From: Takakia lepidozioides
Lineage: Eukaryota; Plantae; Bryophyta
Direction: 5' to 3'
Assembly: GCA_030704615.1 (NCBI GenBank)
Contig: CM060732.1
Span: 71,982,001 to 72,046,000 of the forward strand
Length of the DNA: 64,000 nucleotides
Positions 2,484 to 44,500 of this stretch are shown piece by piece. Position numbers and translations under genes: made by a program. Positions within the stretch are counted from its first letter, which is position 1, and the number at the start of each line of letters is the position of its first letter. The notes beneath the pieces were generated by a model, which saw only the letters and a list, made by a program, of their open reading frames with translations, ran no database searches and was not told the DNA's origin.

Positions 2484-4281
2484 CTTTACCAACGATTTCT
2501 AGACAACTAAGAAACTAACCTATTCTGGCAGTACAATGCCGAAACCGCTTGTCTTATGATCAAAAACGATCTGAAAAGAAAAGTGTACCAATATATGCAT
2601 CTACAGCATGCCCCACACCATATAACTCTAACACCAAGCCCATGACCATGTCATATCCGTCATCTTTGCCACTCTTCTCTTTCATTCCTTGTGGTCACCC
2701 ATTCTTTCCACAAATACACGTCAAAGTCGTAGATATAAGATGTCTCAGAGTCTACTAGGACTCACAGTTTGATTCCCCTGCACCTAACAGGATTTTTGGG
2801 CATGTACTGCCGAATAGCACAATATTTTCCTTTATATCTCATTATAACTTCGCATTGTGAGCATTTTGCACCGTTGTTTACATGAACAATTTCATTGCAT
2901 GCCCATCTTACCTTCCAAACCTTCTCATATTGGGGACTAGCACAATCAGAAATTAGAGTCTCGTTGTATGGAGACAGTGGATGATTGACTCAAACCTATT
3001 TCAGGTTATGACCTTTCCCCGGGGAGGAGGTGAGCGGACAATGACAAGAATTGAGCGCTTGGCACAAGCTGTTTTTTTTCATCTACTTGAGAATCGGCAT
3101 CTGGCCACACGACCTCCTTCTATTTGCCTTCTAGAAAGCACCAATTGTGCGCACGAGGATGTTTAGGCCACCGCAAGGCACAAGGAGGAGACGACAAGGT
3201 AAGCAAATATTCTTCAGCCTAGATACCCCAAAATGCACCTCACATGTCTCTTAGTTGCAGCATGCTGCAGTACTACTGCCAAATGACTTAAAACTACCAC
3301 AACCTTTATAAGGCTTGGGGGAGGCGGTGGGGACTAAGACTCCTTTGCCTTCTTCCGCTTTGGTACCATAACTTCATGTGCCCACCATAGCAGCCTACCC
3401 CAAACTCATGAGCTAATGAAGACAAAAACTAAAGCATCCGGCCTAATTTTCTATGCGCCCACTAGTGGACTAAATGTAGGGAAGACAACCCTAGACAAAA
3501 GAGGTGCAAAGCATGAAAACAATGAGCGCAATCAAACCAAGTATAAAGGCTTAGAATCTTACAATGCAAACATTGAAAACAAAGAAAAACTAGGTAGCAA
3601 CCCCGCCAATACAAACAAAAGGTGAAAACCAAAATAGGAACGCCACATCATGCATATGGGAGGCTGCAAAACTAGTGTAGTTCATGGTGCACGAGCTGGA
3701 AGGTCGAACTACACTAGAACACGCATATAAGTGACCTTCAAAGATATTGTACTGAGAGTACAATGAAGGAGAGAGAGAAGATTCAACGTGGGGAAATCAA
3801 CTCGTTGGGGTGCAACATGCGTGGAGTCGCGAGCGGTCATGGTTGTCCCCAGGGTGAACATGCAGCCGAGGTGGTATGTGCCCATTACCACTGGGTTAAC
3901 TTGTCCCAGCTTAAGGCATATCTTAGGGGGAACATCCCTGTAAGGTCTCGGCCAGTGTTAATCATCCCCCAAAGACGGCAAAAGATAGATACACCTCAAA
4001 CTTTTGCCCTGCCGCAATTACTCTAAAGCTAGAACCACGCCAAATAATACCACAACCAACCATATGTTACACTCATCCCTTCACAAAATACTCACTATTC
4101 AGCTGTACGATTCAGGAACGAATATTCTATAGCCGTTGTGACATGCAAAAATATAGCTCTCAGCAACATAAAACAACCCACATATTCCCTGCCACTATTC
4201 TCAACGAACAACAACTCCCAACTATGAACAAATACTGATCCTCCCATCTCCAAACAAGCTAAACGAAAATTACAAAAATGG

Positions 4282-5537
4282 ATGCACAACTATACAACTA
4301 CGCAATTACATATACTACTCATACGATGTGGAGATATCCATCCCAACCCAAGCCCTATAAACCGACCCTGTTGCATAACACCACTAGCTACTAACCCAAT
4401 CATAAATGTTGTCCATATACTAGACCCCATTCAAAACATTGTTAAACGCATATTCAAAGTGGCCAAAACAAGATATGGAATATACTTTTACCCCTCCATA
4501 ATTACGCTAAAATTACAGTATAAGTCACACCTTCTTGATATCTTTGCCTCATTCCTACCTAAACCACAATACATTCTTGACCCAGACAATCCAGATGCAC
4601 CTCCATATGGTATAACCACATCCGAGCACTCACTTCTCGCTCATAATAGTTACAAACTCAGATGCTACCCTAAAGACCATGTATTTTTTACATATATAAT
4701 ATGTATATCACCAAAAACCGAAAAAATGTGACATCATTCTCTCTGAAAAACTGGAAACATGCATACCGTCCACACTATCAAAACTCCAAACACTCCCTGA
4801 ACACCCATCGCAATATAAAGCCCCGCCACACCCCCTCAACTGCCTTCACAACTCTCTTGATCTCCTCCAAGCTCCACTTAGCCAAATTCACCAATTACTC
4901 ACAACGTATCTGTTATCTCTCCCACCCACATCTTGTCATACCCTACAACATATCACCATGAAGTTCCTTTCATATCACCAGAAATCCTCTCTGCCACACT
5001 AAACACCCTCACATATCTACTTGGTTTTTGCACATCCAAACATACACCACAACCAACCACATCGGTTAGTCTTGCTGACACAACACCAAACCACAAGCTA
5101 TACCCCTGCCTCCAACCAACCCTCCTCCTGATGAACAAGACTACCTACTAGATCAGCCCCTAATATGTTTCATATGGAATGTCGGCTCCATCGCCTCTAG
5201 TGTCTCCACCCTATCACTTATACTCCAAGAGCCGAATCCCCTACACATTATACTACTTCAAGAAACCAAACTCCAATCGCATACGTCTAATACGTACATA
5301 AATAAGATATTACATAAATATCATTTGATATACGGTAGTCCCCCTTCACCAGAAAAACACACCAGACAACGCGCCTTACTGTATCAACCAGCACGGGGAG
5401 GAGTAGCAATTGGAATACACAAATCCATGCATTCGCAAGATACAACCTCCAAGATTGTTATCCCAGCTCACCTCAAAACCCACCTACAAATAATGCAAAT
5501 ACACATTGGTCCCTATCCAAAATTCAGTATGTATTAA
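4282..5537 (+). mobile_element. 5' fragment of a non-LTR retrotransposon (LINE): 2A-like motif and AP-endonuclease, decayed and truncated
   Basis: LHILLIRCGDIHPNPSP at 4306-4356. APE motifs in one frame from 5175: WNVGS ... IILLQETKL ... ARGGVAIGI. A/C-rich LINE-like composition; frameshifts between the motifs. Confidence 0.8.
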
Positions 5538-5651
5538 CAAAATTGGTGATATACAAAATTGGCGGAATGCTATTACTGTGTTTTCCAACAATATTCAAGG
5601 TACAACAAGAATGCACATTGTCTATGTACTACGCTGCCAATCATTAAAAGC

Positions 5652-7230
5652 CTAGTCGTCACTATCCGAGGACGAGGGATGTGATGTTGTGGCCTGATTT
5701 GCACTGCCAATACGGAGAGCGTGCGATCGTGATCTTGTGGTCAATGAGGGGCCCAATGGCATGTGATCAATTCTGGCCTGCATCCGCCTACTTCGCGGCG
5801 AAAGTTGACTTTCTTCTTCACTCTCACGACGTGGCGGAGGTGGATCGACAACAAGTGCTCGGGCTGCATGCAAATCGGCAACGAGGGCCCGAAACACGAT
5901 GATAACGGTATGTCCATAGTCGCCTCCATTGCTCTACAACTGCTTTGATGGTAGTTTTGAAACTTTCCAACTGCCTCTCGCAGGCCCTATCCCTAATCAT
6001 TGTGTCGTTTCGACGATAAGCCGCCTCGTGCGCCTCATTCATTCGGCGTTGACATATTATAGCATCTTAATTCGGACAGCAACAAATGTCTCCCAATCGG
6101 TTCTCGGTCATATAATTCGTTCTCCTCCGGCACCCATGGAACCTGTGGGAGCCGGATAAACCTGGACATTCTCTGACTCTAATGCCTTCCCAAATTGCGG
6201 CAAAACTGCTTTCTCTCCCACCAATCGGGAATGCCTCCCGCACGTATGGTTATCTCCCAGTCAAATGTGACCCATAAATACTGGGGATCTTTGACGTATG
6301 TCGGGTTTCCGGCATGTATGCCATGCATATCTCTATCTGCATCCCATACCAAGTTCTTGCCCCAATGCACACAATTTAAATGGTAGCCCATCCAATGGGA
6401 GGTTGTGTCGATTGTATTCAAAACCTATGGGCATCCTTTCCTCCAAGCCCACCAGCTCATAGATCGGCGATGGATTGGTGTACGACATTCTGGGCAAGCA
6501 CTCATCCACAAGGCTTGCGGGATAAGACATGTGAGATGGAACATATGTCCACATGATCCAAGCATATGACATCCCTCTGGGCCGTATGGATTCCTGCACA
6601 TCGAACAAACTGTGCCATCTGATATCCATGTTTATGCTTCTGTTCGACCCCAAAATTCTGTGCTCACATCGATCGAACATAGAATCCACATCTGCCCAGT
6701 TGGTATACCCGGCGAACACGCTTGATGCGATGCGGAGATCGTTATACCTTTGCATGTTAGCATAAATTCTATCCACGCTACGGTTCGACATGCGTGCGAC
6801 ACGTTGCAAGGCTGACAGTGGCCGCTTTACCCATGCTTCTCTGGAGGCCAAATGGGTCGCCCATTGTACCCAATTCTCCCAATCGCCATTCAATGGGACT
6901 CATGCCCGAATCTCCAATGTTTTGGACAAGTGCCATGCAATTGTCATGGCAATGTCCCGCTCCTTTGTAACGCGGTCAACATCAGATATCGAATTCATCT
7001 CGGATTGAATGACGACCCTCGAACATTCCCCGGTTTCCGGTACTGGTTCTTGTCCTTTCCTTCTTCTCTCATCAGCAATTCGTTGTTCCTCAACCATGGT
7101 TTCATCGGCCGCACGGTCAAGGACGTACGTAATTTTGTGAATGATGAGGTCGACACTACGATCGGGCATTGCAAACTCCGTGTCCATATCCACGACGTTT
7201 GTTCGATTCTCATTGTGGACTACGAATGAT
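5652..7230 (-). pseudogene. Decayed accessory ORF (about 500 codons) downstream of pol, unknown function
   Basis: ORFs 6900-7193 and 6333-6893 share a frame, separated by one stop. 6179-6421 and 5824-6042/5652-5897 continue after frameshifts, ending in SSSDSDD*. Confidence 0.55.
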
Positions 7231-7235
7231 ATGCA

Positions 7236-10200
7236 TCAAAATGATACAATATGGCCCAATAGTTTCCCTTTGGTAACCAAAGATTGGCATTTACCTGCAT
7301 TCAGGGAGATTCCATACTCTTTACATTTCTGGAAACACAACTCCAACATCTCAACATATGTTGTTTTACTGCTAAAGACACAAAAATCATCCAAAAAGAT
7401 CTCTATAAATAACCGTAAATAGTCTTGGAAGGCTGTAGTCATCACTCGTTGAAACGTAGCGGGAGCATTGCAAAGCCCAAAAGGCATGACCTTATAGACA
7501 TAAGTACCTCAATCGGTAGTGAAAGTAGTCTTTGGCCGATCTTCCTCTGCAATCATGATTTGATTGTAACCAGAAAACCCATCGAGGAAAGAATAACACT
7601 CATGGCCCGCTACTGCATCCAAGATAGTATCGGTAAAAGGCAATGGAAAGCAGTCTTTCCTGGTCACAAATTCGCACTGCCCGATTGCTTCTTGGGGACA
7701 ACCACTCTCGGCGATACCCAATCGCTATAAGGTACAGGATAAATGAAACCAGTAGCTAACAATTTATCCAGTTCTTCTTTAACCAACAAAGAATATTTAG
7801 GATTCAATCGATGTTGGCGTTGCCGCACTGGCATTGTTCCTTCCTCCAATATAATGCAATGCTGGCAAATTTCTGGGGGTACACCCCGAAGATCAGTATA
7901 AGTCCATGCAAAAGCCGTACGATGTTTCTGAAAAAACTCCTTCCACATAGACAATTCATTTGATGGAATATCCGCAGAGATTATAATTTCATTGGGTTCA
8001 GCAGCCGTATTCAAATTCAAGGTTTGGTAGGGGTCATTCTTCACCAATGAAGCACGATTATCATCAGCCGAATCGTACCACGCGATATCTTCCGACGTGG
8101 AAGTCAATTCCCACTCAGATTCATGCTACACCATGTAGGATGAACGGGCTCCCTCCCATCGCAAAACATCATCATCAAAGTCACTATCAAAATCACCATG
8201 CCAGGGATACTCCCCTAGATTAGCACATCGGTAAATCCGTTGGCTACGTGTATGCTTAGGCGACAGTGGTATGACTTGAAAATCACTATCGGTGTCAGTC
8301 GTCCCTCTTTCAGCTTCGGAAGTAAACTCAGATTCCAGCTCCTGAGTTTCCCCATGATAAGCTACTGGATACATTTGCAAAACCACCTTTTGTTCCCCTT
8401 TACCCAAAGTCAGGGTGCCTTTTCCCCAGTCATAGCTTTAGACTGGAATAACCATGGTCACCCTAATAAAATGGGATAAGAATAGGCAGAGACATTTAGT
8501 CAAAAAACAACATAATCAATGGAGTATTCAATAACATCAACTATAGTTGGGATTGCAGTCAGCACACCCATTGGTTTAACACGACTTTGATCGGCCATCC
8601 TCAACACCAATCGAGTGTTCTGTAAACCACCAAGTCCTAGCTTTTCCATTGTGTCTGAACTCATCAAATTGATACTAGAGCCACCGTCAATCTGGACTCC
8701 AGTAATAACAACGTCATCTATTGTCACATCAAGGACAGGGGCACCTGGATCCGGATTGAGTGTCGATATACTCACTTTGTGGACGTCATTGTTTGATGAC
8801 TGGCTTCTAACCAGAGATGACTGCAAAGAAGATCGACATTGAGGTGCCATAGCCAACAACTGCTGCAAAGAAATAGTAGGTTGCAAAGAATCCAGGTCCG
8901 TCAAAATATCATAATGGACCAAGCCTTTAGTCATCGCCATAACCTGCCTCCGCCGCGATCCCTTGACATGTCTTATCTTGCCATTACCCATTTTCGGACA
9001 AGTATACTTCCCTCGATTCCTCTGCTAGACTGGCTCCGTTCTAGGTTGGGGTATAACAAATGATATTACAGGATCAGGGTCGATAGAGTCCACGATAGTG
9101 GAAGGTGGATGGACAACCAAGCTAGGCGATATCATCGGTGGTATCGAATGAATATTGGGTATGGTCGGCAACGATTGTTGCACCCCATCGGTTGGCTTGG
9201 AGTTCACACTATCGGGGGTCTTTAAGGCATATTCCTCCACAATAGGATCCATCGGCAGTAGCTTACAAGCTTTGGTAGTCACTGCTTTGACCATGGGAAC
9301 ATCTGACTCAACATTAAAATAATAAGATTGCAAGGGGGTATCGGCTACTTCCATCTTGCATTTACCTTTCAAGGTGGCTCTTTTATCAGCCAATAACAAA
9401 TTCGTATCACCTGTCCTATCCTCCACACATTCCTGTACTGTTACTCGATTCACAACTCGATTTGTATTAGTATTTCCAAAAGAATGTGATGGGCCTGCAG
9501 CTGATGGAGCTGTACCTGAAACTGGAGGCATAAGAACTGTTGAAGGTTGCTGATGTATAGGATTTTGAGGATATGGACTCTCACATTGTTCGGCGATATG
9601 GCCCTGACCACCACAACGTCCACACAGCGGTATGTAATCAACCGGGGCCTTTGGATTAGGGCATTCGCTGGCAATATGTCCAATCTCATGGCAACGATAA
9701 CAAACAAGATATTGACCATTCCTCAATCGCCGAGCAGACGGCCGATAAGAAGAATTGGGCTGTTGTGGATACAATTGCTGCTGTTGGGCACCCCCATAGG
9801 TTTGGCCATAGGCCCCCTGAGGTAGTTTTCCCCTCATTTGCTGTCAAGCAGGTTGATTAGCCGGCTGATACCAGCTCTGTGGCCCTCGGGTTGGTCTCCA
9901 TGGTTGCAGACTCTGGGGAGGTTGATCAAACCATTGAACTGACCATTTTGATTGGCAGGTGGTGGGGTTAACCCAATCTGATTGACATCCCATCCAGTTC
10001 TTTGGTTATTCTTAATTGGAGTCAATCCCACGGCTGATTGCAAATGCCAACACTGTAGTATCACATGTCCTGCCTTACCACAATAACCACATTTAGCACC
10101 AGCTCCATTAGTGGGATTGGTCACTGGGGCCAATGGGCACTCATTAGCAAGATGACCATGGACCTGACAATTAGAACACCACGTATTGGTTCTCTGATTA

Positions 10201-11959
10201 TTTGGCTTTGGTCTCCCTTCTCTCTTAGAAGCCAATTGCACGGTCTTCTTAGTTAATGCAACAATCTGTCATTCTTGCGGGTCAATTACTACTCCAGCTG
10301 GTAATTGGTTCTTTAGAGATACAGGGGCAACATTCCCACAGTAGGCTGAGCTGGAGAGGGGAACATAGTCATTGGAACTGGCGATGTTTGTGGGGCCCAG
10401 GAATTAGTGTCAAACATTGTCGTGGGCCCAATTGAATAAGTAGTGACATTAATGATTTCCCATAGCTTTTCCCGATTGATTGCCGCCTGTAAATATGCAG
10501 GAATACCTTCCTTAACAAAACGTTTCGGGTGAATGCAGGGTTGACTGGACCAAAATGGACGTTACCGGCACAGTTTTAGATGATTGCAATTGATGGTGTC
10601 ATCAATTGAATTTGAATTAACTCATTAAAACCAAAAAATATATATGTCATTGGATTCCTAGATTCAATACGCACCCATAGCAACTCTCCAATCATGAATA
10701 TGATAAGAAATGACTCTGCTATGGACTTTTGAACACCGTCATTGTGGACTGTTACCGCAGTGAATGGAATTATAATGGATTCAAGTTCTCCTATGTGCCA
10801 TTGGTGAATTCCATTGAAATTTGGACTTAAGGTGGCCATTTTGGTCCACATCAAAGGTATGGATTTGAAGTGGCAAAATCATTTGTCATGTGACTCATAT
10901 GGACTAATATATGTAAAAAAAATAGGCGTTTTTTGAAAAGTCCATAGCTCATCTTGTTTTTTGGATTTTGGGTGTCATTGTTTTTCTAGAAGTATAAAAA
11001 CCTATAATCTTCAATGGCTAGGTGGCATATTGATTTTTTTTTTGTAAATTCTAATTTTTAGTTTTTCATAATTTCTCTAAATAATACACTAAAATATTTA
11101 ATGAATTATATCTTTAATATTTGGGGTAGATCTCTTTACTAAATATGTTCAAAATACCATTATCTATCACTAAAAAAATATTTTGGATAGTATCATCAAC
11201 TTTTTGTTTTTTGGTCATGGACTTTCATGGAGTAGGATCTGCCGTTTTTGGTCCACTCAACCCTGCAACTGCCCTTTCAGTTCTGTTGGGGACAACCCTT
11301 CTACAAATAGACCCATCTGCATATGGTTGGGAATATTATGATTGTTCCATCGCCGAAGAATATCCTCTAGGCGACCTGCAAAAGAATCTACCGACTCGCC
11401 TATCACCATATGAAGTTCTGTCAATTGCTCCCGTAGGCGATCGGTAAAACCCAAGGGTCGAAATTGTGTTAGGAAAGCTGTCTTTAAGGAATTCCAATCG
11501 GAAAATGCTCCATGCTGTTGCCGATCATACCATTGAAATGCTAACTCACGCAAAGTGGCAGGGAACATTGTCAACCAACAAAATTCCATCCTGGCATTAT
11601 TAGCAATACAAGCTGTCATAAATTGAACCAAATTGCGGTCGGGATATGACCCTTGAAGTCCCGTAAACTGTGGCATGGACGATACATTGACGGTTCTATC
11701 ATTGGGTCCTCCCATGTTCACTACTACTGGGATTGATTGGAGAGATTGATTGGAGAGCGGCCACAATCGGTACTGCCGCCATTGGTGCTAGTACAATAGA
11801 TGGTACAATAGGTAGTGCGAGGGGTGCAATAGGGGGCTCGATAGGTGGCGTCGATGCAGCTGCCTGTGCGGCTAATAATGCATGTCATGCTATCCGTACT
11901 ACCAATCGATCGGCTCTGGCGTTAGCCTTATGCTCCGTGGTTACGGGGGATTCATTCAT
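7236..11959 (-). pseudogene. gag-pol of the gypsy element (Gag, four CCHC knuckles, aspartic protease, partial RT)
   Basis: Gag: LRELAFQWY...LKTAFLTQFRP. CX2CX4HX4C four times in 9025-10241. Protease: VQIDGGSSINLM. RT: WVSPRVVVPKK, YSFLDGFSGYNQI, MPFGLCNAPATFQR, IFLDDFCVFS, LLGHIVS. Multiple stops and frameshifts. Confidence 0.93.
10527..11274. mobile_element. 748-bp non-autonomous DNA transposon inserted in gag; about 29-bp TIR, 4-bp TSD TTTC
   Basis: Left end GGGTGAATGCAGGGTTGACTGGACCAAAA; right end reverse complement GGGCAGTTGCAGGGTTGAGTGGACCAAAA. TTTC at 10523-10526 and 11275-11278. Removing it restores the Gag frame GLSPTELK-RFVKEGIPAYLQAAIN. Confidence 0.9.
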
Positions 11960-12348
11960 ACCCCATAACCCCTTCTTCTTAATTGAGAAAACAAAGTGAT
12001 CTCCTTGATTTCTTGCAACAGACAATTCAAGTGTTGTTGATGTCTTCTCCTGTTCAGGTGACAACTGAATCTGCTCCTCTCGAGCTATCGCCAGAGCTGG
12101 CATCTCCGCTTTTTGTTGGCTTAGCACCCGGAAGTTCAATCGTCTCACTCGCCTTCCTCTGACTCCAAAAGCATTCATGGATCTCTGCCTTCTTATGCTG
12201 ATTACGTAAATTGCAATAAGGACTGAGTTTAATTCAAGTGGGGGAACCTTACTATTACAAATGATTTCCCCTGTCATCTCGTATTCCTTCAACAAAAAGT
12301 AGGTATCTTGAAAATTTAGTAAAACATCACTATAGCAAACTGCATCGT

Positions 12349-12362
12349 CGGCAGCAGCGCCA
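12349..12362 (-). promoter_or_regulatory. Primer-binding site of the gypsy element
   Basis: TGGCGCTGCTGCCG on the minus strand, 6 nt after the LTR-terminal CA. Resembles the TGGCGCCGTTGCCG PBS of Athila-type elements. Confidence 0.8.
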
Positions 12363-12521
12363 AAAAGATGTAGAATAAAACTATAATCAACCCTAAGGAA
12401 ATGATCAATCAGTCTTGAGTTCATTCGCTGGGGAAAGTACTACACGACTGCAACATAATGATGCCATGTTACTCTATTTATCTTCATTCTCTCCACAGAG
12501 AGTTTTCTACCATTACTTATC

Positions 12522-12809
12522 TCAATCTATAGCAACTAAAACTCTACCAGTTTCAATAATATTCCCTCCATTCTCTATCAACTCTATTCCATTGGATGAG
12601 ATCAAATACCATTGTTCATCTAATTCTCTTCTCCAGTAATCTGCTTGATACAAGGTCAATAGCTCTCGACACCATTCTTTACTCACCAACCATAAATTGA
12701 TTATCTCTCTGTCACTACATTACAGTCTTTTAAAGATATCTAACGACAGACTATTAGGTAGTCCAGTAATTAATTCTACAGGATCTACTATCCGTTCTTT
12801 TCCACACAT
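12522..12809 (-). pseudogene. LTR-embedded F-box ORF, copy 3 (one in-frame stop, later frameshift)
   Basis: Manual translation: MCGKERIVDPVELITGLPNSLSLDIFKRL*CSDREIINLWLVSKEWSRAI (stop at 12720-12722), then a shifted tail LYQADYWRRELDEQWY. Confidence 0.75.
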
Positions 12810-12825
12810 CACTATCGATCACTCT

Positions 12826-13111
12826 TCACCACCAATCTTGTTTCTTCAGTTGCTCCAGGGATTTTCCCTCATCAAAGTTATTATTCCATTCTCTCATAAA
12901 TTCAGGATAGCCTTCAAATGGTCTATACCATGTCTGCAACCAACTGTGCTTCCAATAACAACTCATGTATAGAAATGATATTTCCCTATACCATCCTCTA
13001 TTGACTAATTGTAATAAGAATACTTCTTCAAAGCTTCTGAAAGATTATTATCGGTAATCCAGTGATCAATTCTGATACTTCTTTTATTCCCTCATCATTG
13101 CTTTCTGCCAT
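12826..13111 (-). pseudogene. LTR-embedded F-box ORF, copy 2 (small deletions/frameshift)
   Basis: Manual translation: MAESNDEGIKEVSELITGLPIIIFQKL / EEVFLLQLVNRGWYREISFLYMSYWKHSWLQTWYRPFEGYPEFMREWNNNFDEGKSLEQLKKQDWW*. Confidence 0.75.
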
Positions 13112-13146
13112 GCAAATGATTTTACTTCACTGTTATATTCTTTCAA

Positions 13147-13503
13147 TTAATCCAATCGAAGACTCTCTATTTTCATTTCTTTAATCTGCTCCTTCATGAA
13201 TTTTGGATAACCATCTATCGGACAACACCACATACTGATCCATTTACGTCCCAATTGGCGATGTTTATGTAGAATTGATAATTCCTTTCTCCAGGGTTTA
13301 CTCACACTTTCTATTCGAACTAACTCTGCCTCATTGCAAGATAAACTCTTAAATATCCGTATCGATATTTCTCTGGGTAAGCCATGGATTAATTCTTGCT
13401 CAGAATCTTTATCCTCTCCATTTGTGCACATTCTCACTATCTCATATAAATATAATTCTTCAACCATTACATGCAGGATCAAATTCTCATTCCATCGTTC
13501 CAT
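13147..13503 (-). CDS. LTR-embedded small F-box protein, copy 1 (open frame; alternative start at 13431)
   Basis: ELIHGLPREISIRIFKSL...LVRIESVSKPWRKEL matches the F-box consensus (L..LP.E....IF..L......+..VSK.W+.L). Confidence 0.8.
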   Translation of the reverse strand: MERWNENLILHVMVEELYLYEIVRMCTNGEDKDSEQELIHGLPREISIRIFKSLSCNEAELVRIESVSKPWRKELSILHKHRQLGRKWISMWCCPIDGYPKFMKEQIKEMKIESLRLD

Positions 13504-14280
13504 TCTTCACACAACACAAAGTGAATTGAACTTCTTTTTTCTCCTTTTTCTCTTCTATTCATTTACAAACACAACATCACAAGAATGCAACACTTAATCT
13601 ACCATTGAAGAATAACTCTATATTCTAACTCCTACTCACCCTACTCTCCCTGGTTATGGTTCTCTGGCTCAACTGACGCCGTCTGCTTTACATGAATGCA
13701 ATATATAGCAAAGTGCTCCAACAACTTTAATAACCGCTCAACCTCTTATATCCATCCTTTATAATCATTCATCCACTTCTTCTATCATCTAGTCACAGAT
13801 AGACTATCGGTTGCATACAAGATATCGAGGAACATTGCTCTATCGCAGCAATAACCAAGGTATCGCAAAGTATATCGATGGAAAAATGCACTATTTAAAA
13901 AAAAATTGTAACTGAGTCAGAAATTTCTATTATTCTACAGTTTACTAGTGCCTCCATTCTACGCTTCGTCGCTTGGGTAGACATGTCACAGACTATTGGT
14001 TGTTCCCACTGGCTCTATGTCCAGCAACCATCCTTAATTGAATCTCGCTTACACTTTCCTTCCTATTTTTCTGCACCCCGTTTTTTGCCCAAAGCCCTTT
14101 TTGCTCGTTCCATTCTATCTTCTTCTAATTCTTGAATCATCCTCTAATCCTCACAGCCCACACAAACTTGGGGGGCTTATTTTACTATGCACAAATTGCT
14201 CAAATTCTAGCATGTCTTCGTAATACTTCCTAATTGGCATGACTCAGCATAACAGGGACCATGAATGTTTCTGGACCAAT

Positions 14281-14679
14281 AAAGTTATCCGTTAAGTCCC
14301 GCCCTCTTTGACATTCTCATCCATCCCCACATGCGGTTTTGGTGGGCAGTTTGAGCCTATCCGTCAATAAAATTGGCACGAGTTGAGTAAACTGGGCACA
14401 AGCGGAACAAAGATGTAGCAGGGCATTGTGAATGTGGGAAGGGTCAATATGATGGGAGCGTGGGCCTCGCGTCCAGCTCATCCACGTGTCCTAGGACGGG
14501 ACGCCGCACAGAGGAAGATGGGATCAAACACATTTGCGCTGGTTTTTCCTGCTATTTTGAGTTTGGCCCCCTATTTATTTCGCTTGTACTTTGTGGGCCC
14601 GCTTTATAGACGTTCACCCTCTCTTCTGACCAAACTGGCCAAACTCACCCTGCATCCCCTGGACTTAACGGATAACTTT
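14281..14679. mobile_element. 399-bp MITE, 19-bp perfect TIR, apparent 3-bp TSD AAT
   Basis: AAAGTTATCCGTTAAGTCC ... GGACTTAACGGATAACTTT; AAT at 14278-14280 and 14680-14682. Confidence 0.8.
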
Positions 14680-28517: not shown

Positions 28518-31500
28518 ATGGCGTCATACTGGACATGGATGTGGCTGACAGCGGTGGTTACTATGTTGGCTGTGGCCTCAGCTGAAACTTGCAGTACAAG
28601 TTATTCGTCCAGGAACTTCGCAACTTGTAAGCAATTGCCAGCCTTAGGAGCCACTCTTGCCTGGACACTCTACGAAAACAACAACACCATAGATTTTGCT
28701 TTTTCAGGTACGTCCTGCGGGGAACAAACTCTTTCCGCATTTGCTGCATGCATTAGTGTTTAGTTCCCCTGTTGGTGTTATTGTGCCTTGATGTTGTTCG
28801 AACATTGTTGATAGCCTCCTTTGCGATCAGTAGTCTGAGCCCCAAGAAAGAGCCGTTCCTGGGGGAGAGGAGAATCCGGCCTAAGCCTGGAACCTAAATA
28901 AGATCCGCTGCCCCTTGCACCCTTCCGGGTGTTTCTCCGGGTGACCTGGGACTGGATTAGTTGGGCTACAATCAGTGTGGATTTTTGTTGTACACTTTCC
29001 TATAGTCTCAAAATGTTGACGCTGGAGGACAATGTTTGGGAAATCGGCATTGGGATTTTTGCAGATGCCGCACCAAGTGCTAGTGGATGGGTGGGATGGG
29101 GCATCAATCCAAAATCTGCTACCATGGCTGGCACACAGGCCCTCATTGCCTTTCAGGACTCAAACGGAACTGTGGTGAAAACATACAATGTGACCAGTGC
29201 AAACCTGAATTTTTCTCCCCTCACACCAGGCAAAGTTGGGGTTAACTTCACAGATACTAAAGCAGAGATGGTGGGGTCACAAGTGACAATTTATGCGACC
29301 TTGCATCTTCAACCAGACCAGTCACTTGACTTGATTCATGTGTGGAACCGTGGTTCTACCGTCACTCTCAGCACCTCACAGCCAGCTGCACATGCCTTCG
29401 CCGCTGAAAACCTAGCCAGTGTATCTTCTATTACTATGTCGACTGGAGCTAGCACCAGCATACAGATTCCACACCAGAGATTGAAAAATGTGAGTGGCTT
29501 TGCACAGCTTATAGCCCACACTTTCAGCAGCTTGTCCTTGCTTTGTATTTTCAGGCCTGGTTTTGCTAGGCTATCTCTGTCTACCCTGCACGCTGTAATC
29601 TTCTTGAAATGCGAGGATTTGTGCCAGTCTCATTCTAACTGGTCGTCTTACAAGCCATGTCTGTTGCCATGAGATTGTCTGATGAAAATGAAGTTAGGCA
29701 GAAAACTTCCTTGAACTCGTTTCCAGTCTGTGACATGGGGGAGGACATCATGGATGACCTCACTCTAGGCACTAGACTGAAATTCAAACTCAGGGCAGGA
29801 AGCTTACAGCAAACAGAAGTAGAGAGGAAAGGGAGAGTGCAATTGCCCGTTGTGTGGGCAACCTGAAGACAGTAATCATTTTCTGATACACTGTCCGGGG
29901 TTCTCTCACCAAAGAGACGCTCTCTTCAAATCTATCAAGGGAATTGTGCCTGTACCCCTGTTTACTAACTTTGAAAGTCTCGAGGCTGAGCCAAAAGCCC
30001 AGGCCCTTCTGAGGCCTAGTTTTTGGGCAAATCACACACATCAGATTGATGCTTGTGTGAAGGGATTTCTAGAGGATATCTGGAAAACCCGGATTAATTC
30101 CATATATGAAGGTAAGTCTTACTACCAACGTCAGCCCCTGACAGAGGTAGGTTCTGTCCCTTTTGTTTCCGCTCAAACTGGGCGCAGGTCAATGGCCACA
30201 TGGCTACGGCAAACAACGTCTTATGAATACATTCTAACTGGTCGTCTTACATTTTCTAATTTAGAAGTTGGTTTGGCAATTACATCCAGTAGCATATTTG
30301 TCCTGATTCTATCCAGATGAGTAATCAACAACTGTGGGATACCGGCCGGTACTCTTGCAGACCAACAGTTTTGGAAATCCTTTCGTTTGATGCAAAACAA
30401 GTCAACCATGTAACTTTACTGACTAAGTGCCACAAAAGAGTAAATGCTCTGTCCCTCTGGTAATTGGTTTCCAGCCATGCAAGGCCCAGGTTGAGTTTTT
30501 CTCTTAGGCATCCAGGCACAAGCTTCCATGTGCAGCAGAATAGATGGAACCTGAACGGTGAGGTTAAGGGGTTTCAGCATTTTGCTTAGTTGTTGAATGT
30601 CCACCTGGGACTGTTGGTCCTTTCAGTTTTCTTTTGTGTGCAAGACATATTTTAGTTCCTTAGCTGCTGTCCTTCTGTGTGGGAGTCCTGCAGGAGTCTC
30701 CACCAGTAAACACCCAACTAATTTCCTCCCTGATGCAGTGATATAGGACAAAATCAAACCTGAAAAACAAGTGTAGTGAGTAACTGGTTTTGTTGCCGCA
30801 CTCATTTCAGAGGCATGGAATTATCAGTGCGGTATCCTGGGGGATACTCCTTCCGGTGGGCGTGATGTCAGCTCGATATCTGCGCCCTTTATCACCCGAC
30901 GGTCAACTGTGGTTCTACGTGCATGTCACCTGCCAGTGCATCGGCTATATCCTGGGTGTGCTGGGCTGGGCCATTGGTCTCAAACTCGAGAGCTACAACA
31001 AGAACGCTGTATTCTATAAACACAGGAATTTGGGCATTTCCATCTTTGCTTTAGCTACCCTACAGGTATAAGCCTCCCCACCTTCGTGATCTCTTCGCTA
31101 TTGCAACTCTGTATCTACCATGGCAGATGCTGGGTGTTGTGGTGAGGCCCTCACAGGTAAAATCCTCCCCACCATCCCCACGGCATACTCTCTTTGTGTT
31201 GCAGATCTGATACCTCTGCTATGGCAGGTGATGGCTATACTGTTGAGGCCCAAAAAAGACCACAAGGTGCGAAAGTACTGGAATATCTACCATTATACAC
31301 TTGGTTACACGACTATCATCCTTATCATAGTCAACATTTTTGAGGGAATCAAGATCTTGGCACCTGGCAACGGTTGGAGGCGTGCCTACATTGTGATCAT
31401 TGCCGTCTTGGGTGGCATTAGCCTGCTACTTGAGATTGTCAGCTGGGTTGTTTGGTTTCGACGTCGCCAACAAACCCCTTCCAAGAGATCGGACCAAATT

Positions 31501-34398: not shown

Positions 34399-34962
34399 CT
34401 AGAGCTCATCCTCCATGCGCAAGTACTCCCCGAGGTCTGCCTGATGCAAGGCTACAATATCAGTCGGGTCCAATTTGCGGCAGTCCTGCGTAGACTTCGC
34501 TGCCAGCCCAAACCCTAGCGGTACATCCGACATGGAGTAGATCACCACCCCTTGGTACTGAGGGGTGTTGTCCGTAATCCTTCCCAGCCCACTTTTCAAA
34601 ACATTGTTCCCATACAGGAATGACATCTCTGCCGACGGCTTGAGCCATATCTTATGCTTGGCATGAGCGGCAAGGAGGTCAAGGCAAGTCACTGTGAGCC
34701 GAAACTTACCGCTCTTCGTAAATTTCCCCAGACAGGTCCCCAGACCAAAGAGCTTCTCTCGTCCAACATTAGTAGCCCGCTTCACGAGAGCCTCGCTCAC
34801 ATAGTAGACCCGCTGCTTGTGAAGACGAAAGCAATAACCCCCAGGAGTCCCATCAGGGCCTTCATGAGCGGGGCGCTCAATCAAGTGCCGCAGGTTACTG
34901 CCCACAAATTTGTGCAGCTTTTCCAGCACTTGTGTCGTCTCTGCCTCGTCCAGGGGACGCAT
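34399..34962 (-). CDS. NIP7: 60S ribosome subunit biogenesis protein NIP7, intronless
   Basis: MRPLDEAET...[13 protein letters not shown]...[15 protein letters not shown]...[29 protein letters not shown]...[10 protein letters not shown]. Confidence 0.97.
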
Positions 34963-41527: not shown

Positions 41528-44500
41528 TCATTGGACACTGCACGTTTTGGGTACAAAGCCGATGCGCTTGGCGACAGTATCGTACACAACTTGAAAATTT
41601 TGCTGCTGGAGGCTGCCGATAATACTCATGTCGGGTGACTGTGCTATTGACAGACAGTAAGACTGACTACTTTCGAGGTAGATGAAATAGTTGCTTTGAG
41701 GCACCTCCATATCCGCATTGGCAAAGTGGAAGATGAGATTCGGTACTTTGGGTGGTTGAGCTTTTGTACCAGAGAAGCACAAATCAAGGCCCTGGAAGTT
41801 GTTCGCATTCCTTGGATATGAAATTGTGGACGCATTCATCGCACTCAAAACTGCATTGTAGGCACCTTCTGTCAACTGTGTGACGGTGGTACCTGAATCG
41901 AAAATTGTTCCACCACCTCCCACTCGGTCGATGTCGAATGTCCCTGCTGGAATTGCAAGCAATTGACCTCCCACAGTAATTCCTGTGAGTTGCACATAGT
42001 AGTATGTGGGCTTCTTTGGGTTGGTCAGAATGCCAGTGTATTTGACATTGGGTAATGTGGGCACTGCAGCTTCTCCAAAGAGTAAGGGGCTGGTCTGTGT
42101 AGCAGGTGCCTGCCAATCCACTAGACAATAGGAAAATTTTCCCTGGAGGACAGACTTCAGCTGTGAAGGAAAAGAAAGAGAGCCTTGGCCCAAGCCCAAC
42201 AGCCCATCCGCACCAGCAAAGGAGCCTTCGTTATCATGTCCACAGCCGAATGCAAAATTTGAGAGCTGCAAAACAAGATACAAGTGTTCATGCACATGTC
42301 TACTCCAAAAAGTACAAGACATTGCATGAAATACGAAGAGAATCAAGCATGAGTCCAGTGACCAGGAAGTTGAATAGGTAGGTGCCCATTACTACTGTGT
42401 GACTCTACAACATCCCCAGAAATACCCTACTGACACTGCACAGCAAGGGATAGGCTGGGAGAGATATCGAACCACCAATCACAAAGTTCAGTTCATGGTA
42501 TATTGAGCACTAGCATTGTTGTCTCTGAAAAATGCACTATGGTGACGGGACACTAGTACATACCCTCATCCATACCACCACAGCAAAATACTAGCTGTAC
42601 AAAATCTCACAAACAATTCACAGGACTTGTCTACAAGCTTGAGTTTGCAGCTGCTGACTCATCGCACTGTTATGAGAGCACATGGGTCTGGACTACTCTG
42701 CTCACTACCTTTCCACTCCGAGGAATCTGAACAACATGCTTCCACTGGGGTCTTCTGTCATGAAAAGGATCACATGGAAATGACCTTACCTGCTGTGCTT
42801 GCCCGCTTACTGCATCCAGCGTAATGGTATCAAACACAAAGTCGCCAGTTGACAGAGAGCCATCACCATAGGCATACCAGTAGACACAGCCTGTATTGTT
42901 GCACATAGGATAAGGAAGCCCCTGGCACAGTGCACTGTTGCAAGCTAACTGCAGACACCCCAACAACATTTGTAAGATGTTGTGTTAACAACCATACCAA
43001 ACTATAGAATGGAGAGGAAAAACTAGCTCTCCAAGGGACGATCTCTGCTTTACATGTATCAAGACACTTCTTTGGTTCCTACTTCAGCAAGTGTGGGAAT
43101 AAACAGACACCCACAACCGCTGGTGAGGTAAACCTTGCACAATATCCATGGAAGATGATCCATAGAGCCCCTGCTGCGATAATCTGCCTGAAACAACAAC
43201 GCTTGGCAACGTTCCTGAGGCCAGCAGACCGCCAAATACCAGCCTATGACGTAGTACGTGCCGTGGACTAAAAGGTAGACATCGAGCATACTGGCAGCCC
43301 GCTCATGCATAGGATACCCCATATTAGGCTATTTTTTCATGTACAGAGTGGCATATCGAGCTGCAGGAGGAGAGTAATGCCTATGTCAGGTTTGCTCTCC
43401 GAATACACCCAAGGTCGTTAAGGTGAGATCTTGGTTGTCAATCTCAACTGGAGTGCATGTGTGTCGCTGAGACACATAGCATCGCAACATATCTGAGTGG
43501 CGTCTTTGGCCACAAAACACTGACCGTCCGACAGTCAACATTTGCACAAAGGTATGATCGGAAGAGTTATCTCAGCGAAGTCGACGGGAATGCAGAGACG
43601 TACCTTCGTGTATGATGTAGAGTTGTTAGGGCTGAACAGGGAGTCGTTCTGGGGGTAGCACTGTGCGCACGGAGAACATTGTACCCATGTAAGATCGCTG
43701 CCTGTGTCCACGACAACTGAGAAGATCCGTTCAGGTGTGCCGAGTCTTACTGTGGCCAGATACTCGCCCCTTGCTGCAGCGACTGGTGCTTCAAACCCAC
43801 CTGTACAGAAGCATGAGGGAAACACTGTCCATATAAATGTCCTCAGGCAACTTAGGTTAATGGAATGAAAGACGGAGAACGTAAGCCAGCCCTAAGCTTA
43901 TTGGAAAGGGCTGAAAAGGTTGTTAGCAGTAGGCAATTATCGCTGCTGCGCATTAAGTCAAATGGAGGAGAGTACAATCTCTAAGAGGACAAAGTGTTCC
44001 AAAAAGAGAGCAAGAGACAGACATCAAACTTTAGCTCCCTGGGCTGAAGGGCAGGCGTACATCAGAAAGAACAACAAGCATTTCTGAGTCTCGCTAAAAT
44101 GAAGGACCTGGCTCTATGTATACAGACCTGTATAGAATGCCCTTGCATTTTTTCCACATCCCCACAGAACAGCTGAACTGCAAACCTGTCAGTCCTGTTC
44201 TAACGATAAAAAAAATGATGACTGGAACACTAGTTGAAATTGCAGAGGGAAATATAAATTGCATTACCTGCGGCTATGCCACCTCCAGCTCCAGGCCCAC
44301 TTTTGGTTCCACGCACAGGCCTGCCCTTAAGTCGTTGTCGCAGCGCGTTGGCCCGAAGTGAGCTTCTTTGGATTGCACAGTGAAGACGCTCGTGGTCCGG
44401 ACTTCTGCTGGATTGTGGTCCGCAATGCCCTTCTCTCCGCCGAAGCTCCACTTTCACACCTTGACCCCTATGATTGCTACCTCTATGACTATTCCTTCTA

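Follow-up and report, generated by a model that had tools for sequence, protein, structure and literature searches.

What might the long terminal repeat (LTR) of a retrotransposon encode? LTRs are regarded as control regions without coding content, and anything encoded in them is concealed by repeat masking. The question is raised by a 64,000-nucleotide stretch of Takakia lepidozioides DNA (the window), in which a 1.57-kb unit with the features of the 5' LTR of a truncated Ty3/gypsy-type element contains three small open reading frames (ORFs), one after the other and all of the same sense, which the initial annotation had taken for a cassette of F-box genes. How it is answered depends on whether the unit is an LTR, whether the ORFs do determine F-box proteins, whether they belong to a family of elements or to a single copy, and whether selection has acted on their products. 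In the reading that we prefer, to which we would give a probability of roughly 0.55, a high-copy Ty3/gypsy-type family carries in its LTR three F-box-only mini-genes, the likely SKP1-binding products of which would serve the element.

The ends of the LTR-like unit (Table 1) are of the TG...CA type and form a perfect inverted repeat of 10 bp (TGTAGAATAA at 13939-13930 and TTATTCTACA at 12378-12369, both on the minus strand). The initial annotation had described LTR boundaries with an adjacent primer-binding site (PBS), and of this the perfect terminal repeats, and a site beginning with TGG 6 nt further on, were confirmed; the PBS-like stretch was not matched to a tRNA, and a search for one within the window found none. 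The segment 12349-12380, which takes in the LTR end and part of this stretch, is common to contigs of another, transcribed family (runs X5 and X6). A TATA-like box had also been placed at about 13705, and TATATAT is indeed found there, upstream of the units, though as a motif only; several ATGs intervene between it (13707) and the first unit.

Table 1. Features of the truncated element and of the three F-box-like units in its LTR-like unit, in window coordinates and in order along the minus strand.
Feature	Position	Strand	Basis or remark
LTR-like unit, putative 5' LTR of truncated Ty3/gypsy-type element	12369-13939	-	1571 nt; TG...CA ends, contig depth
TATA-like motif, TATATAT	13701-13707	-	pattern scan; motif only
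Unit 1, intact F-box-like mini-ORF (94 codons and stop)	13147-13431	-	ORF list, Pfam
Unit 2, first piece (start codon to ...GLPIIIFQKL, then stop after frame change)	13031-13111	-	translation
Unit 2, second piece, in another frame (F-box remainder, tail, stop)	12826-13029	-	translation, BLASTP
Unit 3, first piece (start codon to ...IFKRL)	12723-12809	-	translation, BLASTP
Unit 3, in-frame stop private to the window copy	12720-12722	-	contig comparison
Unit 3, second piece (F-box remainder, tail, stop)	12522-12719	-	translation, BLASTP
PBS-like stretch with TGG start, TGGCGCTGCTGCC...	12345-12362	-	6-nt spacer after LTR end
gag (Retrotrans_gag)	11257-11766	-	PF03732, E 3.2e-13
CCHC zinc-knuckle part of gag	9025-10241	-	PF00098, E 8.5e-8
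Protease and reverse transcriptase (RT), up to truncation point	7239-8991	-	PF13650 (weak); tblastn with pol of L001

Directly downstream of the LTR-like unit, and on the same strand, come gag, its CCHC part, protease and RT. The element has been compared with two relatives from metagenome assemblies, L001, which belongs to another organism, and L002, the gag proteins of which are 59-68% identical to that of the window element (68% in the case of L001). The match of pol to L001 (tblastn) breaks off inside RT, at window position 7239, having reached residue 508 out of 699, and the window element has neither an integrase nor the end of RNase H, and a 3' LTR is missing too. The copy in the window is thus an old one, truncated at its 3' end and interrupted by a foreign insert inside gag. 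Because of the 3' truncation there is no twin LTR or target-site duplication here that could confirm the boundary, and when the LTR was compared by BLASTN with the entire window it matched nothing but itself, neither a second copy nor a DNA-level tandem repeat being found.

How many such units does the genome contain, and where do they end? When contigs of two DNA runs from the same organism (X1 and X3) were aligned to 11000-14400 at a likeness of at least 80%, 1049 and 1334 pieces, respectively, were placed there, with likenesses of 80-99% that were spread from 99% to below 90%. Summed contig depth, which is only a rough guide to copy number, was 1200-2600 within the LTR-like unit in X1, and about 300 in the bin just outside it (13964-14077). 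At this outer end the depth fell about fourfold, from 1217 and 2006 in the two runs (bin 13850-13963) to 307 and 710 (bin 13964-14077). On the inner side, depth in X1 was 350-980 over most of 11342-12253 and about 1160 in the bin adjoining the LTR. The LTR-like unit is covered 2-4 times as deeply as the internal 5' part. LTRs together with solo LTRs would give just such a pattern.

These data bear on the idea that the 1.57-kb stretch is no LTR at all, but a repeated leader or some other repeat lying upstream of a truncated element, in which case the F-box genes would not be LTR-borne. The window does lack a second LTR and a target-site duplication, and the PBS-like site 6 nt past the end has not been matched to a tRNA; on the other hand, the stretch ends in perfect TG...CA inverted repeats, a site beginning with TGG stands directly before gag on the same strand, and the depth of the unit, with its drop in the bin past the outer end, is difficult to reconcile with such an arrangement. 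We regard this as the least probable of the alternatives considered here. The assignment of the unit as an LTR rests on its ends, the PBS-like site and contig depth.

Within the LTR-like unit, and wholly inside it, the array occupies 12522-13431. The motif ELIxGLP occurs at 13395, 13072 and 12776 in units 1, 2 and 3, giving intervals of 323 and 296 nt, which agrees with the spacing of about 300-320 bp originally reported for three sense-strand units. Each unit has about 95 codons, and the spacers between the ORFs are just 35 and 16 nt long. The three have a common build (unit 1 being taken from 13431), in which a start codon is followed by 11-13 mostly charged residues and then by ELIxGLP. The description of each unit as possessing its own ATG, a short charged leader and the beginning of an F-box agrees with this. 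In the window copy the frame of unit 1 is open further upstream, to an ATG at 13503 (13503-13147, 118 aa), but all other copies that cover the site have a stop at 13452-13450 in the leader (contig alignment). The 118-aa frame is thus peculiar to the window copy, and for the family the ATG at 13431 is the most likely start, giving an ORF of 94 aa.

As had been noted from the outset, units 2 and 3 are damaged in the window copy. Unit 2 is broken at two points, by a short deletion after GLP (a loss of four residues relative to units 1 and 3) and by a change of frame near 13031; unit 3 has a single in-frame stop. The pieces can nevertheless be aligned with each other and with unit 1: the second piece of unit 2 matches unit 1 (BLASTP E 8e-11), the second piece of unit 3 matches unit 2 (E 4e-9) and unit 1 (E 8e-6), and the first piece of unit 3 matches unit 1 (E 6e-5). 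The F-box region is followed by a tail of about 45 residues, rich in W and containing GYPxFM in units 1 and 2, which matches nothing. A repeat search and BLASTN within the window did not detect the units as DNA repeats, and a hidden Markov model (HMM) built from the three found no further units in any of the six frames of the window.

Are these proteins F-box proteins? Scoring against PF12937 and PF00646, as had been suggested in the initial annotation, gave a divided result. Unit 1 in its 94-aa form (residues 16-49) just passes for PF12937, the F-box-like family (E 2.3e-5, 24.5 bits, cut-off 24.3), and the 118-aa form falls just under the same cut-off (24.1 bits); for PF00646 unit 1 remains below the cut-off of 20.5 (E 1.4e-3, 18.9 bits), and the pieces of units 2 and 3, scored alone, give nothing. 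In an alignment of the units, ELIxGLP...IF..L...(V)(S/N)(K/R)xW is found in all three, and comprises the L-P, the hydrophobic core of helix 1 and the V-x-K-x-W of F-boxes, which substantiates the proposal that the units, strongly diverged as they are, have kept the consensus residues. The spacing of these residues is the same in units 1 and 3, and unit 2 is shortened in the window copy only. Neighbours in a protein language model include small F-box clusters, with scores of 0.88-0.91 in the case of unit 1 and of 0.77-0.82 when the second piece of unit 2 was used, and are to be taken as leads only. Structure prediction contributed little: the AlphaFold2 model of the mini-protein is poor (mean pLDDT 59), with helices at residues 20-29, 34-41 and 46-56, and a Foldseek comparison of this low-confidence model with the PDB gave no match at E <= 0.001. 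Sequence and profile searches of PDB chains likewise revealed no F-box protein, the rows returned being chance ones (E >0.4). All in all, the units are likely to specify F-boxes, even if by formal tests the assignment is a borderline one.

The array is not an accident of the window copy. The contig pieces from X1 and X3 cover every bin of it, several hundred related pieces being found over its whole length, and the suggestion that it is the property of a high-copy family, as opposed to a one-off insertion, is thereby borne out. The lesions are private. The stop in unit 3 begins at 12722, where all 22 contigs from X1 and all 18 from X3 have a different letter, which gives a sense codon. As for the breaks in unit 2, other copies have loose ends there, at 13053 and 13028, both with extra letters; the frame of the upstream piece stays open in the former and that of the downstream piece in the latter. 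(These ends were checked by script and left unjoined.) The damage to units 2 and 3 is therefore limited to the window copy, other copies being open at the sites concerned. Not all copies are complete, since in each run one contig joins 12873 to 13106, and some copies must consequently lack most of unit 2.

If the array is ancient and its products are useful, the units should bear the marks of selection at the protein level, as the initial annotation had supposed. The comparison of synonymous and non-synonymous change was made between the three units of the window copy, on a protein-guided alignment, and gave dN values of 0.59-0.87 and dS values that were 1.8-1.9 or not computable. At first and second codon positions the units show an identity of 0.41-0.62, and at third positions one of 0.33-0.43, for which composition would predict 0.28. 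The coding frames contain no stop in unit 1 and one in unit 3, where composition would predict about eight per unit (at a stop probability of 0.088 per codon), and the other sense frames of the units have 8-15. Gaps tell a similar story. Among the longest contigs listed, those that are 11-19% unlike the window over the coding parts have none (records 3, 5, 12 and 13, and record 11 in its longer piece), whereas those over the non-coding segment 13500-13880 have five each (records 6, 7 and 14); and the well-supported insertions and deletions in the LTR, among those listed, all lie upstream of 13431. That units at synonymous saturation have kept both their frame and their F-box residues implies long-term selection on the proteins, although some of the divergence between the units may have preceded their capture. 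Each of these lines of evidence has its weak point, but together they indicate long-term constraint, or purifying selection, on the proteins, and the early view of a cassette under selection has to this extent been strengthened by the dN/dS values, the stop counts and the gap-free diverged contigs.

The same observations tell against the possibility that the units are sub-repeats of the LTR with a role in cis, whether as enhancer or promoter modules or in RNA structure, and that their frames and likeness to F-boxes are by-products. The U3 part of an LTR often contains tandem sub-repeats, and the regular spacing of the units (296-323 nt) would be in keeping with such an origin. Yet the units are unrecognizable as repeats of DNA and are clearly related as proteins (with E values down to 8e-11), it is the first and second codon positions that are most conserved, and each unit has one nearly stop-free frame; a DNA or RNA element would give the opposite pattern. 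A role of this kind seems to us very unlikely.

The main rival to our preferred reading is of a different sort, namely that pieces of a host F-box gene were captured, being either triplicated in the LTR or taken up as an array, and that they have no function, their open frames reflecting recent copying from an intact master element. There are precedents for capture: Pack-MULEs, Helitrons and LTR elements acquire gene fragments, and plant transposons often pick up pieces of host genes, those for F-box proteins among them. The many degenerate copies with deletions inside the array, as deduced from contig joints, are also what might be expected of functionless cargo, and so is the outcome for X5 and X6, two runs guessed to be of RNA, in which no contig falls on 12482-14191; the coverage there is confined to the region of the LTR end and PBS, and comes from the contigs of the other family mentioned above. 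It is less easy to see why functionless fragments that are synonymously saturated should have kept frame, length and motif, or why copies up to about 19% unlike the window should be gap-free over unit 1. Captured fragments resemble the array in being host-derived F-box sequence in a mobile element, but they are usually partial, single, internal and decaying, whereas here three complete small ORFs, with signs of coding constraint, are situated in an LTR. On balance we consider the capture of inert fragments unlikely, while giving it more weight than any other alternative.

No parent gene was found in the host, which says little, since exact look-ups showed that the proteins of the host genome are not represented in the collections searched. 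A word-indexed search for homologues of unit 1 was blank, and carries little weight for the same reason, as was a search of protein collections with a profile of the units. In a phmmer search of unit 1 against 1.84 billion representatives, again not including host proteins, the only hit was a low-complexity repeat protein (P0001), which was spurious and was dismissed as a homologue.

No relative of unit 1 was detected in metagenome contigs, and there are no F-box units in L001 or L002 (the sequence of L001 has no 5' LTR, which prevented an LTR from being defined for it). In place of such units L001 has other ORFs, located after the integrase gene. Thus, the F-box cargo is not general to the lineage. 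A pattern combining the LTR end with the PBS-like stretch had 69 matches in metagenomes, but we attribute these to chance, as none was accompanied by gag, RT, the units or similarity to the LTR. We consider the F-box array to be real, family-wide and, as a cargo, probably functional.

What, then, might the cargo do? Each unit would encode an F-box-only mini-protein, made up of a short charged leader, an F-box and a W-rich tail of about 45 residues, and these proteins could be produced from any transcript that contains the LTR, be it the full-length RNA or an LTR-only RNA, including those from solo LTRs. Through the F-box, the mini-proteins would be expected to bind host SKP1. The short tail might then recruit a target for SCF-dependent degradation, or SKP1 might be titrated, with the element benefiting in either case. 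Candidate targets would include a host restriction or silencing factor, or the mini-proteins might serve to control the proteins of the element itself. Judged from the sequence, such a hijacking of SCF is plausible. A point that counts against it, and against the preferred reading as a whole, is that three closely packed ORFs on one eukaryotic mRNA would be hard to translate. The more specific suggestion that the LTR encodes SCF substrate adaptors, supplied both by full-length copies and by solo LTRs, which send a host silencing or restriction factor to degradation, is by analogy conceivable but distinctly doubtful. If adaptors they are, each of the three diverged paralogues might have a target, or a SKP1 partner, of its own.

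Several known systems share one or other of these features. Genes lying in LTR sequence occur in animal retroviruses, in the form of MMTV sag (in U3) and HIV/SIV nef (which overlaps U3). Like the proposed products of the array, for which action on the host is a suggestion, these are host-acting accessory proteins encoded in LTR sequence and hence in both LTRs; they differ in belonging to animal retroviruses, in being specified by a single ORF that is expressed from spliced mRNAs or an internal promoter, and in having no F-box. The array itself may be situated in U3, like sag, or else in R/U5, ahead of gag. F-box proteins that co-opt SCF are known from polerovirus P0, nanovirus Clink and VirF of Agrobacterium, P0 being the model for the F-box-dependent removal of a silencing factor, AGO1. 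They have in common with the predicted products of the units that they are small or minimal F-box proteins of a genetic parasite of plants, but there is no sequence relationship, and here the carrier is an endogenous retrotransposon. For the anti-silencing version of our reading, there is a functional analogy in VANC, the accessory protein by which Mutator-like transposons of the VANDAL type counter the epigenetic silencing of their own family by the host. VANC is likewise an accessory protein encoded by a transposon, though it is the cargo of a DNA transposon, binds DNA and has no F-box.

A further comparison is with the additional ORFs (aORFs) of plant LTR retrotransposons, such as ORF1 of Ogre and the antisense ORFs of Retand/Tat elements, which are described from the interval separating the LTR from gag or from that separating pol from the 3' LTR (PMC7264820). 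In these, too, coding capacity beyond gag-pol is carried by whole families of elements, with functions that are not known or are regulatory. However, aORFs lie outside the LTR, whereas the units described here are all inside the LTR-like unit and form a tandem set of three paralogous mini-genes. The review of aORFs mentions neither an F-box nor an ORF within an LTR (PMC7264820), and our full-text search of the literature found no report of F-box ORFs in LTRs. To judge by sequence, the array would combine themes of all these systems and is a member of none of the families concerned.

If the preferred reading is correct, every solo LTR of the family could act as a gene whose product connects with the ubiquitin system of the host, and plants would possess a new class of transposon counter-measure, or of transposon self-regulation. 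Were the anti-silencing version to apply, the array would be to a retrotransposon what P0 is to a polerovirus, or VANC to a VANDAL transposon. The preferred reading, if correct, would also argue for scanning libraries of LTRs for hidden coding cargo.

Elsewhere in the window, a land-plant or streptophyte host is indicated by the genes surrounding the element, which include those for NIP7, an aspartic protease of the TAXi type and a DUF568/DOMON protein.

Variation within the array of three F-box-like mini-ORFs (units 1-3) carried by the LTR is indicated by contigs from the two DNA runs of the same organism: in both, one contig per run joins position 12873 of the window to 13106, skipping 232 nt and having six other letters between. 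From these joints, it follows that some copies of the family are without most of unit 2 (12826-13111, minus strand) and carry two units. The array also has a strongly skewed composition, its sense strand (window 12525-13431, minus strand) being 36% A, 28% T, 24% G and 11% C, and in the window-wide profile GC skew is strongest here and at 4001-6000.

A different kind of extra cargo is found in a relative lacking F-box units, an element on a metagenome contig (L001) whose gag is 68% identical to that of the window element. Where the window family has F-box units in its LTR, this relative has two ORFs following integrase (see the table), for which no Pfam hit is on record.

How widely might the end of the LTR be shared? 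In two runs tentatively taken to be RNA, contigs matched only at 12238-12295 and 12349-12380 (within window 12238-12380), segments that cover the LTR end, the PBS-like site and the start of the leader, and on either side of these matches the contigs continue into unlike sequence. These two runs seem to contain a second family, possibly as transcripts, that shares the LTR end and PBS. A long open frame also spans this junction (see the table); no Pfam family was assigned to it, the HMM built from the F-box units does not match it, and it lacks an F-box-like motif. Elsewhere in the window, the genes for NIP7, a TAXi aspartic protease and a DUF568/DOMON protein (also in the table) together indicate that the host is a land plant or a close relative.

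Features of the LTR end, the related element and neighbouring genes
Feature	Location	Strand	Description
179-codon open frame	window 11885-12424	-	begins in last 56 nt of LTR, crosses PBS-like site into leader
Two ORFs after integrase	L001 6174-7341	sense	258 and 87 aa, many charged residues
NIP7 gene, intronless	window 34399-34962	-	pre-PUA and PUA domains, 187 aa
TAXi aspartic protease	window 41528-42346		
DUF568/DOMON protein	window 28929-29672		

The gag of the window element is itself split by foreign DNA, an insert some 780 nt long (window 10509-11292), across which the match to the L001 gag jumps from 11275 to 10519. The insert has imperfect terminal inverted repeats of 47 nt (72% complementary), and at 11000-11341 the summed depth of contigs reaches 5-10 times the LTR value. 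In appearance the insert is a MITE-like element of very high copy number.
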